A DNA stretch of 64,000 nt, taken from assembly GCA_002269645.1 (NCBI GenBank), contig NIVC01000084.1, positions 434,001-498,000 of the forward strand, read 5' to 3'. Positions 16,450 through 19,400 of this stretch are shown here, in pieces. Position numbers and translations under genes: made by a program. Source of the stretch: Macrostomum lignano. Its lineage: Eukaryota. The notes beneath the pieces are model-generated. The model saw only the letters and a list, made by a program, of their open reading frames with translations. It made no database searches and was not told the origin of the DNA. How positions within the stretch are numbered: position 1 is the first letter of the stretch; every line of letters starts with the position of its first letter.

Positions 16450-19400
16450 CTAGGCCTGCAGCTCCACCATTGGTAAATCTTTGCCGTTAGATTTTCCAGC
16501 CTCGTCATTCTTGCCTCTGGTCGCTTTTTCTCCTCTGTCTCCGACGCGGTTGTCGTCCGACGTTTCAAAGTCGCCGGCGCAGACAAAGTGAGTGAAAGCT
16601 GCACAGTAGCAGTGCGACAGCCCTATGGCGCCTGAGCGCATGCGATCGCTGCAAAATTGGATGCATTTTTTCTCCTATAGTTTATTCAAAAGGTCGTGCC
16701 AAGCGAGCAAGGCTTTAATATTTTTATCAGTTATCAGTATAATATTTGCTGGAGTGGGTTGCCGCGGAAACCTGCATGGCGCAACGCCTTCGGCGACACC
16801 ATCCGCTGACTACTGAGCACATACGAGTACACACGCTCACACAATGTGTACAGCGGTCCGGACTCTCTAATCACGAGGCATGTGACACTCTCTGTGCCTT
16901 GGGCTGCTGGCCCTCATGACTGACAACCCCAGACTAATTTTAATGCCCAAGCCACAAATGAAACTCGCCGCGCACGAAATGGAACCAAGTGTCATGCCCC
17001 ACCCCCGGTGCTGGTGTCTGCACTCAAATCAAATGGTATCTACCCCTCAAAGATGTTTCCCATTGAATGAAAAAACCAGATTGTGCTCCTGTCAAAGTCA
17101 AAAGTCAAAAGTATATTCTTTCAAAATGGCTTTTATATCTCAGTTATCGTGATAGTCAAACAAAACTCACAGCAGCCAATCCACTGAGTAGAGTAGAGCC
17201 ACCTCAGTCTCCGATATGCCGACCGAGGTCAGAATGGTGACAAGGATCACCAGGCTGGCTGACGGTATGTTCGGCAGGGCAAGCATGGCTGACGACACCA
17301 GTAGGACGATGATGACAATCGTGCCCGCCGAGATGGGGTAGCCGGTCAGCTGGCCGATGAACACCGCCGCCACCGAGATGAAGCAGGCGCTGCCGTCGCC
17401 TTTGATTGCGGCGGCGAACGGAATGACAAAGCGAGAGATATCCTGGTGGATGCCGTAGCTGTCACAGCACTCTATCATCTCCGGTATGGCAACAACTCTG
17501 CAATAATAGATAGATAGATAGATAGATAAATAGATAGATAGATAGATAGATAGATAGATAGATAGATAGATAGATAGATAGATAGATAGATAGATAGATA
17601 GATAGATAGATAGATAGATAGATAGATAGATAGATAGATAGATAGATAGATAGATAGATAGATAGATAGATAGATAGATAGATAGATAGATAGATAGATA
17701 GATAGATGGATGGATAGATAGATAGATAGATAGATAGATAGATAGATAGATAGATAGATAGATAGATAGATAGATAGATAGATGGATAGATAGATAGATA
17801 GATAGATAGATAGATAGATGGATAGATAGATAGATAGATAGATAGATAGATAGATAGATAGATAGATAGATAGATGGATAGATAGATAGATAGATAGATA
17901 AATAGATAGATAGATAGATAGATGGATAGATAGATAGATAGATAGATAGATAGATAAATAGATAGATAGATAGATAGATAGATAGATAGATAGATAGATA
18001 GATAGATAGATAGATAGATAGATAGATAGATAGATAGATAGATAGATAGATAGATAAATAGATAGATAGATAGATAGATAGATAGATAGATAGATAGATA
18101 GATAGATAAATAGATAGATAGATAGATAGATAGATAGATAGATAAATAGATAGATAGATAGATAGATATACCAGCCCTCGCACTCACGGCGCAGTGGTAG
18201 CAAAGGAGATGCACCAGGAGCGAAAAGTCTTCACCAGGAACCAAATGGGGTTGCGCCGGCCAGCGGCAATAAACACAACCTGCAGCAGGATGAAGTGAAT
18301 GGCCAGTGCAATTGTCACGCTCACAATGAAGAGACCCAGTTTAATCAGCGTAGAAGCCGGATCCACCACGTCGGCGATAGACGAAGCGATCATAAAACAG
18401 ACGCCCGGTGGAGTCAACCTGTGAAGTGCAAAACAGTGATACATTTGCTATAGTATCAAGGGAAACATTCTCCATGCCAGACTCAGGGGCGAACAAATCA
18501 ACTCCTGACCAAGACACCGGCCTCAATCCCCTGCTTCAGCACGACACCAAAATCACTCCCCTGCCCCAGAAATACGACCACATCACCCTCATGCCCAGCA
18601 AGGCACCCACCTCACTCCGCTACCCCAGCAAGACACCAACGTCACTCCGCTACCCCAGCAAGACACCCGCCTCACTCCTGTGCCCCAGCAAGATACCCAC
18701 CTCACTCTCCTACCCCAGCAAGACACCCGCCTCACTCCCGTGCCCCAGCAAGACACCCAACTCACTCTCCTACCCCAGCAAGACACCCACCTCACTCCCG
18801 TGCCCCAGCAACACACCCACCTCACTCCCCTACCCCAGCGAGATACCCACCTCACTTCCCTACCCCAGCAAGACACCCACCTCACTCCCCTACCCCAGCG
18901 AGATACCCACCTCACTCCCCTACCCCAGCAAGACACCAACCTCACTCCCCTGCCCCAGCAAGACACCCGCCTCACTCCCCTGTCCCAGCAAGACACCCGC
19001 CTCACTCCCCTGTCCCAGCAAGACACCCACCTCACTTCCCTGCCCCAGCAAGACACCCACCTCACTCCCCTACCCCAGCAAGACACCCGCCTCACTCCCC
19101 TGCCCCAGCAAGACACCCACTTCACTCCCTTGCCCCAGAAAAACAACCAAACTAAGTGGCGCTTACCAGAGAAACCAGCGCATGACCTTGATGACCACTT
19201 GAGCCAAGGATTTGAAAAAAGCAATAAACGCCTCTCCCTGAGGCCCCACAGTGCGTGCAGCCATGCCAAACACGGCGGCGCAGAAGATCACACCAATCAT
19301 GTTCACCGAGGCCGAGTTTGACACGATTCTTGTGTCGGAGATCTCAGTTAAGTTCGTCTCGCTTCTGTTCAGCATCCCGAGCTGCATTAGTTGCTTTCGC

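Follow-up and report, generated by a model that had tools for sequence, protein, structure and literature searches.

How does a carrier of the glutamate transporter family work when it has kept two main residues that hold its amino acid and given up nearly all the side chains that hold its coupling ions? The question is raised by a gene located in a 64,000-nucleotide stretch of the free-living flatworm Macrostomum lignano (assembly GCA_002269645.1, contig NIVC01000084.1, forward strand positions 434,001 to 498,000), referred to here as the window, which is composed of eukaryotic, repeat-rich DNA. The gene encodes an SLC1 protein. Three-frame translation and inspection of splice sites defined seven exons on the minus strand, from 22338 to 16450, with an open reading frame (ORF) intact over 556 amino acids; the interval 16450-18418, to which the original prediction referred, comprises exons 5 to 7 only, from helical hairpin 1 (HP1) through the C-terminus. 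The answer to which we give about an even chance is that the protein would carry out an ASCT-like exchange of amino acids without Na1, Na3 or K+ coupling, the ammonium group of a lysine, K414, pairing with a retained aspartate, D416. The exons, with the transmembrane helices (TM) and hairpins they encode, are as follows.

22041..22338, minus strand: exon 1, with the ATG at 22338, the N-terminal tail and TM1; its donor is GTAATA
20960..21034, minus strand: exon 2, start of TM2 (AMPGELFIRLLKLTILPLIASNVVV), with canonical AG/GT splice sites
20761..20883, minus strand: exon 3, TM3 with Y144 I145 M146 V147 A148 N149, the A148-N149 codons being at 20815-20810
19167..19584, minus strand: exon 4, the extracellular TM4b-c loop followed by TM4c and TM5; spliced in the same way in the ortholog contig L001
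18188..18418, minus strand: exon 5, TM5-TM6 and HP1a as far as ATTAP; junction confirmed by L001
17171..17497, minus strand: exon 6, HP1b, TM7, HP2 and the beginning of TM8
16450..16648, minus strand: exon 7, TM8, the C-terminal tail and the stop codon TAG at 16452-16450

Every junction follows the GT..AG rule, with GT(A/G)AG-like sequences at the 5' ends of the introns and a pyrimidine tract plus AG at their 3' ends. The Logan contig L001 (SRR28338165, 1337 nt), which comes from a related species, has exons 4 to 7 joined at exactly the predicted positions and thus confirms the 4/5, 5/6 and 6/7 joins; since it carries the exons already joined, it also suggests that the ortholog is transcribed. 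The 556-amino-acid model is identical at 549 of its 556 positions (99%) to a GenBank protein of M. lignano, P0001, named "hypothetical protein BOX15_Mlig022109g1". Three N-glycosylation sequons (N174, N238 and N243) lie within the long TM4b-c loop encoded by exon 4, the loop that bears the glycosylation sites in EAATs.

Membership of the protein in the SLC1/DAACS family is established by its profile and its fold. Over residues 66-497 it scores 236 bits with the Pfam SDF family (PF00375), for which the cutoff is 27.9 (E 8.9e-70), and its closest solved relatives are human EAAT1, EAAT3, EAAT2 and ASCT2 (E 1e-65 to 1e-56). An AlphaFold2 model made from a 62-sequence alignment has a mean predicted local distance difference test score (pLDDT) of 82, exceeding 90 across the transport core, and a predicted TM-score of 0.80. 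It shows the standard SLC1 topology of eight TM helices and the HP1 (362-396) and HP2 (439-474) hairpins, and TM7 is broken, or unwound, precisely at residues 414-416 (K-G-D). The superposition on known structures that the original prediction had proposed as a check was made with Foldseek: the model fits ASCT2, EAAT2 and EAAT3 in their inward-facing states (TM-scores, normalised to the target, of 0.90-0.94), and for the closest matches the root-mean-square deviation is 2.1-2.9 Å. The L001 ortholog has 77% amino-acid and 72% nucleotide identity, and the ratio of nonsynonymous to synonymous substitutions (dN/dS, Nei-Gojobori) between the two, calculated for 392 codons, is 0.11, and for the core from HP1 to TM8 it is 0.06, with dS at about 1.1-1.5 and synonymous sites therefore near saturation. 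The locus is a functional, spliced gene kept under purifying selection, encoding a plasma-membrane-type SLC1 (DAACS) elevator transporter for which transport itself is predicted.

When the protein is aligned to human EAAT1 with HMMER (5llu, E 8e-65), not a single gap falls within the stretch from HP1 through TM8; the positional equivalences are therefore sound, and the wrong alignment that might have produced the unusual motifs is excluded. Reference positions are in GltPh numbering unless EAAC1 is named. The altered and the retained sites, all encoded on the minus strand, are these.

HP1: GTSSSSATLP reads ATTAPVVAIP, the serine-rich tip SSSS having become T380-A381-P382-V383
TM7, 17403-17389 for KGDGS (K414-S418): NMDGTALYEAV reads KGDGSACFISV
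TM7, 17403-17401: N310 is K414 (AAA)
TM7: M311 is G415
TM7: D312 is retained as D416
TM7: T314 is S418
TM7: the tyrosine beside the coupling glutamate is F421
TM7: the coupling glutamate itself (EAAC1 E373) is I422
HP2 tip, 17277-17254: SIGAAGIPQAG reads MLALPNIPSAS, with L456-P457-N458-I459-P460-S461-A462-S463
TM8, 16647-16612: the canonical DRFRTMVNVLGD reads DRMRSGAIGLSH, D492-H503
TM8: D394 is retained as D492
TM8: R397 is retained as R495
TM8: T398 is S496
TM8: N401 is I499
TM8: D405 is H503
TM3: YYMSTT reads YIMVAN, with Y144 and I145 at GltPh Y88 and Y89
TM3: T92 is A148 and S93 is N149

The four motifs quoted in the original prediction, KGDGS, TTAPVV, CFISV and the TM8 segment DRMRSGAIGLSH, are all present and had been assigned to the right positions; TTAPVV corresponds to T379-V384 and straddles the junction of exons 5 and 6, which divides the P382 codon into CC and A, and CFISV corresponds to C420-V424, with the F421-I422 codons at 17382-17377. 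The reading of N310, N401 and D405 as K, I and H also agrees with the alignment to EAAT1, as does the loss of the coupling glutamate (LYEAV to CFISV, I422). The TM3 substitutions at T92 and S93, to which the original prediction did not refer, remove hydroxyl ligands of Na3. Taken together, the side-chain ligands of Na1 (D405) and of Na3 (T92, S93 and N310) have been replaced, D312 alone remaining, as have the two carboxylates, D454 and E373 of EAAC1, that have been linked to the binding of K+ and the coupling of H+. The statement that the substrate residues are kept holds for D394 and R397, but part of the substrate contacts is lost: N401 and the HP1 serines are gone and the HP2 tip is remodelled.

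Of the six positions in the Na+-site signature ([S/T]92-93, N310, [M/S]311, [D/E]312, [D/E]405; PMC12668577) five differ in the window protein, the sole match being D416 at [D/E]312. Where EAATs have the coupling glutamate and the preceding tyrosine that mark H+/K+ coupling, it has I422 and F421, while the EAAT substrate pair is in place, with R495 (R446/R397) for the side-chain carboxylate and D492 (D394) for the alpha-amino group. It departs from the ASCT pattern in keeping R397 rather than T or C, in having KGDG instead of NMDG and in having H503 at 405; from the prokaryotic H+ signature (hydrophobic 92, L311, N405), which A148 fits, it departs in G415 and H503. The replaced positions are nearly invariant elsewhere: among 149 other SLC1/DAACS sequences aligned, N310 is found in 138, M311 in 131, N401 in 141 and D405 in 133. 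Identical substitutions are found in the 99%-identical GenBank protein, in a paralog with 64-67% identity and in the 77%-identical ortholog.

The nearest relatives of the protein are that M. lignano paralog, many tapeworm proteins (40-50% identity) and mollusc "EAAT-like" proteins (36-43%); vertebrate EAATs, at 27-32%, are not among them. When 1.84 billion cluster representatives were scanned exhaustively with HMMER, 5307 matches were returned, and motifs were tabulated for the best 150 of these and for the matches of the first search. A second homolog search with a profile of the clade described below returned essentially the same candidates and no added taxa, the word index seemingly being the limit. 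In a neighbour-joining tree of 217 sequences (Kimura distances), 80 sequences with altered sites form one clade with a transfer bootstrap of 0.99; its exact-membership bootstrap is 32-36/100 because a few taxa move, and its monophyly is likely. Named members come from bivalves, gastropods, a chiton, the nemertean Tubulanus, the annelid Owenia, Seison, the hemichordates Ptychodera and Saccoglossus, a monogenean, many cestodes and Macrostomum. The window protein belongs to this clade by its placement in the tree as well as by its non-acidic residue at 405, its residue other than Met at 311, the lack of the coupling glutamate, S314, N93 and the proline of the HP2 tip.

The altered-site proteins are an old invertebrate paralog family that exists beside a canonical EAAT of the same genome. 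In M. lignano the canonical paralog, Mlig008161 (P0153), is 31% identical to the window protein and, unlike it, has every canonical coupling residue, with the motifs FYMCTT, SSSATLP, NMDGTALYEAV and DRLRTSINVWGD, the last including NVWGD. The proposed survey of flatworms for proteins of the KxDG type gave a uniform result, as K310 is carried by 42 of the 42 flatworm members of the clade, which form a single subclade with a bootstrap of 98/100. Among the tabulated representatives, 30 of 150 of which are named, no K-type member was found in trematodes or planarians, and the best Schistosoma match is canonical. Ptychodera and Saccoglossus also have K310, and their proteins lie in a different subclade, adjoining a member with N310; because of this position the tree suggests that K310 arose at least twice, separately in flatworms and hemichordates.

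The family has undergone an expansion in tapeworms, where five or more paralog groups occur. One record, P0004 (810 amino acids), contains two K-type SLC1 units in tandem and looks like a merged gene model; as it joins two such units, it suggests that K-type paralogs are arranged in tandem in tapeworm genomes. Another apparent merged model, P0077 (480 amino acids, Echinococcus multilocularis), consists of a coiled-coil-like N-terminal part and the first third of a K-type SLC1 protein.

The pattern of residues within the clade was examined in 79 sequences; these are counts over related sequences and describe a trend, not a statistical test. D394 and R397 are each present in 78 of the 79. Position 405 is acidic in none of them, being occupied by His (49), Thr (12), Val (7), Gln (4) and others; none has Met at 311, and none has Glu at the coupling position, which is Ile in 64, the adjacent Tyr being Phe in 68. 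Position 314 is Ser in 65 and Pro in 11, position 93 is Asn in 58, and the HP2-tip proline, P457 in the window protein, is present in 99% of the clade. Positions 310-312 divide the members into 44 with K-x-D, a group, mostly of molluscs, with N-(A/S)-D or N-R-D, and others that lack both N310 and D312. K310 is paired with D312 in all 44 cases, and is accompanied by a non-hydroxyl residue at 92 in 35 of 42 and by a residue other than Asn at 401 in 37 of 44, while the N310 lineages kept T92 in 15 of 18 and N401 in 20 of 20. The clade thus includes stepwise intermediates: in the molluscs the losses are confined to the Na1 aspartate and the coupling glutamate, and the flatworms have K310 in addition and have lost T92 and N401. 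Position 311 is Arg in one subgroup lacking N310 and D312 (GRAGS, MRLGS, ERIGS, SRSGT, CRCGS), which has Q, V or N at 405 and consists of P0126, P0130, P0132, P0135, P0137, P0146, P0151, P0158 and P0188; the five that were looked up are all from bivalves. R311 may be an alternative way to put a fixed positive charge into the same pocket.

How far do known systems resemble this protein? EAAT1-5 (SLC1A1-3, 6, 7) move three Na+ and one H+ in and one K+ out. The window protein shares with them the Pfam family, the predicted elevator fold, the glycosylated TM4b-c loop, D394/R397 and the eukaryotic DRxR motif at 27-32% identity, but it has lost the Na1/Na3 side-chain ligands except D312, both K+-site carboxylates, M311 (now G), N401 (now I), the tyrosine (now F), the HP1 serines (now TAPV) and the canonical HP2 tip, which is rebuilt. 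With ASCT1/2 (SLC1A4/5) it has in common the lack of the coupling glutamate and a Phe in place of Tyr (AIFQ in ASCTs, ACFI here), and ASCT2 is among its best Foldseek matches; those proteins, however, are Na+-dependent, K+-independent exchangers of neutral amino acids that keep NMDG, T92/T93, N401 and D405 and have T or C at 397, where the window protein keeps R397. Its probable drift from Na+ coupling, hydrophobic residue at 92 and non-acidic residue at 405 recall the Na+-independent and GltP-type transporters of prokaryotes (PMC12668577). In the ancestral intermediate of that prokaryotic line, in contrast, Na+ independence came about by allosteric mutations with the sites unaltered, and the prokaryotic H+ signature has L311/N405 with N310 kept and no K310 described, where G311/H405 are found here (PMC12668577).

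Basic side chains that act in place of Na+ have been described in other folds. LaINDY has R159 and H392 at Na1 and Na2, and ApcT has K158 at the position of the LeuT Na2 site (PMC11782487), which is occupied in BasC by K154 (PMC6472337). LaINDY (DASS) is the nearest parallel in kind, as it is a Na+-independent elevator exchanger with a basic residue and a histidine, as proposed for the window protein. The folds and families of LaINDY, ApcT, BasC/LATs and CaiT, all of them Na+-independent carriers with basic residues in former Na+ sites, are nevertheless unrelated to SLC1, and no natural substitution of a basic residue for Na+ within SLC1/DAACS was found described in the literature searched. 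Neither did searches on the clade, on Na+-independent uptake in tapeworms and Hymenolepis and on metazoan EAAT phylogenies return a characterised clade with these substitutions or a functional study of one. The type is not specific to flatworms, since the clade also takes in hemichordates, molluscs and Seison as well as one annelid and one nemertean.

The mechanism that we favor, exchange without Na1, Na3 or K+ coupling, would operate as follows. In canonical carriers the buried carboxylates of D312 and D405 are neutralised by Na3 and Na1, respectively. The change of D405 to H503 would take away the charge at the Na1 site, and the epsilon-ammonium group of K414 would reach into the Na3/Na1 cavity and form an ion pair with the retained D416; by a rough geometric estimate, the reach of an extended lysine from its C-alpha is about that of the asparagine oxygen plus the bound Na+. 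The change of T92 to A148 would make room for this side chain, and S93 to N149 could supply a hydrogen-bond acceptor. The K-G-D loop would in this way be held permanently in the "ion-bound", high-affinity form that places R397 for the substrate, and the substrate would be bound, at its alpha-amino group by D492 and at its side-chain carboxylate by R495, without a need for Na1 or Na3. An "ion-bound" state in the absence of Na+ was observed by Reddy et al. in a Na+-independent ancestral transporter (PMC12668577). The original idea that the lysine replaces a bound Na+ gains indirect support from the co-variation of K310 with D312 (44/44) and with the loss of T92 and N401, and from its apparently separate origins.

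The K+-driven return of the empty carrier would also be lost, with I422 in place of the coupling glutamate and H503 in place of D405. In EAAC1, D454 (D405) and E373 form K+ sites, the mutation D454A abolishes K+ binding and relocation, and mutation of N365 (N310) almost abolishes function (PMC7537348). Phe at the tyrosine position, F421, is as in ASCTs and would point to exchange; since the K+ site is missing and the F-x pair is like that of ASCTs, exchange is the most likely mode. Such transport would proceed without K+ and without two or all three of the Na+, and acidic or other anionic amino acids would probably be favoured, given the conservation of D492 and R495. The uniporter that the original prediction offered among its alternatives finds no specific support, the F-I pair resembling the F-Q of ASCTs and pointing to exchange.

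Several considerations weigh against this mechanism. In EAAC1, the binding of Na+ and of substrate is surprisingly little changed by the mutation D454N (cited in PMC7537348), so the change of D405 to His is by itself no proof of a lost Na+ dependence. The Na2 site is built of backbone carbonyls and cannot be judged from sequence. Na+ dependence has been lost and regained by allosteric mutations that leave the sites untouched (Reddy et al., PMC12668577), so that neither its presence nor its absence can be read reliably from the residues at the sites. The counts of co-variation cover related sequences rather than independent events. Finally, the residues by which the alpha-carboxylate is normally held, N401 and the HP1 serines, are gone; the pose of the substrate may therefore differ, and the substrate might even be something other than a classical amino acid.

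Two other accounts of the same residues are unlikely, each to a similar degree. The first is a symporter in which H503 or the K414/D416 pair is reversibly protonated and the H+ gradient drives uptake, as in bacterial GltP-type carriers and ApcT. Histidine, which titrates near neutral pH, is indeed the commonest residue of the clade at 405 (49/79), the prokaryotic H+ signature combines a hydrophobic 92 with a neutral 405 (PMC12668577), to which A148 and H503 may be compared, and K158 of ApcT has been proposed to work by protonation and deprotonation (PMC11782487). Several flatworm subclades with K310 and D312, close cestode paralogs among them, however, have T or V at 405, so the histidine is dispensable in these close relatives; in addition, the proton acceptor of eukaryotic carriers (the equivalent of E373) is I422, and L311 and N405 of the prokaryotic signature are absent.

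The second account, to which we would likewise give little credence, retains Na+ dependence, with Na+ bound at Na2 and/or at a remodelled site and K414 having another task, for example binding the alpha-carboxylate of the substrate in place of N401. This would explain why K310 tracks the loss of N401 (37/44, as compared to 0/20 in the N310 lineages), and a Na2 site made of backbone carbonyls could persist. The retention of Na+ and substrate binding by EAAC1 D454N (PMC7537348) and the allosteric shifts of coupling seen by Reddy et al. (PMC12668577) are in its favor, and the mollusc relatives with N310, T92, D312 and N401 may still bind Na3. On the other side are the five of six signature positions that differ and the rebuilt HP2 tip with P457, nearly invariant in the clade; moreover, M311, which contributes to Na2, is a glycine here.

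That the protein has lost coupled transport and serves as a substrate-gated anion channel or as a sensor ("transceptor") is very improbable. All its cation-coupling sites are altered, and an uncoupled anion conductance is a general property of SLC1 proteins; yet D394, R397 and the HP1/HP2 architecture are strictly conserved, the occurrence of at least five paralog groups in the gutless, absorptive tapeworms fits nutrient carriers, and the sequence has no specific sign of specialisation as a channel, which leaves the ligand-gated anion channel of the original prediction without specific support. A decaying pseudogene, an assembly error or a misalignment, which the extremely repeat-rich surroundings might bring to mind, was rejected as having a negligible chance in view of the intact ORF, the consensus splice sites, the dN/dS of 0.06-0.11, the gap-free alignment, the confidently predicted fold and the presence of the same residues in independent sequences, from three genes or species of Macrostomum and from some 40 further proteins of flatworms.

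Tandem arrays largely fill four of the six introns of the gene. Intron 5 contains (ATAG)x166 (17506-18168), introns 3 and 4 contain a 30-bp satellite, and intron 1 contains (CTCTC)n over about 750 bp (21167-21913). The arrays of the 30-bp satellite are inverted with respect to each other and flank exon 4, at 18685-19145 in intron 4 and 20186-20646 in intron 3, with arms of 461 nt that are 93% complementary; pairing of these arms in the pre-mRNA could loop out the 418-nt exon 4, giving a frameshifting skip or, by back-splicing, a circular RNA. A further array, of 1.9 kb with a 32-bp unit, occupies 22377-24279 and ends 39 bp upstream of the start codon. Directly after it, at 22339-22360, a pyrimidine tract plus AG (CCCTTCCTTCTAG) is found 7 nt upstream of the ATG, and CCCTTCCTTCTAG could be a spliced-leader trans-splice acceptor, which would account for the little room left for a conventional 5' untranslated region. 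M. lignano trans-splices many of its mRNAs. A bacterial ORF finder reads the tandem arrays of the introns and of the upstream region as long spurious ORFs (YLSIYLSI..., GEERRGEERR...).

The neighbouring coding pieces listed here are unrelated to the transporter.

10520-12957, minus strand: beta-TrCP-like gene with a Beta-TrCP D domain, an F-box and WD40 repeats
4855-5403, plus strand: fragment of a Ras-family GTPase
53470-55943, plus strand: cytochrome P450 of at least two exons
40826-41890, minus strand: ORF with a weak ConA-like lectin/Laminin_G_3 match, below the Pfam threshold

The regions 1020-1973 and 3266-4219, 2246 bp apart, contain two ORF pairs that agree in length and two arrays of a 16-bp satellite (1038-1809 and 3284-4055) that agree in their statistics; these correspondences indicate a tandem segmental duplication.

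The clade has its importance in that the textbook ion-coupling residues (NMDGT, D405 and the coupling Glu) are nearly all replaced while the substrate Asp and Arg are strongly constrained. Tentatively, and with rather less than an even chance, it may be proposed that an invertebrate SLC1 subfamily swapped its bound Na+ for side chains of its own at least twice (N310K with D312), and that it would be the first natural Na+- and K+-independent branch of the glutamate transporter family in animals. With its intermediates the clade is a natural series for how Na+ binding converts to substrate affinity, and it complements the work of Reddy et al. (2025). The genes are already in public databases, where they were named by similarity, and the altered sites are not mentioned in the literature searched. 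Current labels include "excitatory amino acid transporter" (or "-like"), "sodium-dependent ... glt-6" and "neutral amino acid transporter A", and the proteins have been counted as ordinary glutamate transporters, part of the machinery of glutamate clearance, for instance among the seven "SLC1A" genes of Taenia multiceps and in a 2026 metazoan survey; as statements about mechanism, these names may be in error. Provided that the tapeworm paralogs serve as nutrient carriers and that their coupling site differs from that of every host SLC1 protein, they merit examination as selective drug targets. In the older physiology literature, the uptake of amino acids by the tapeworm tegument is described as Na+-independent and prone to exchange. 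Should the mechanism proposed here be true, the radiation to at least five tapeworm paralogs would be a candidate molecular basis for that uptake.

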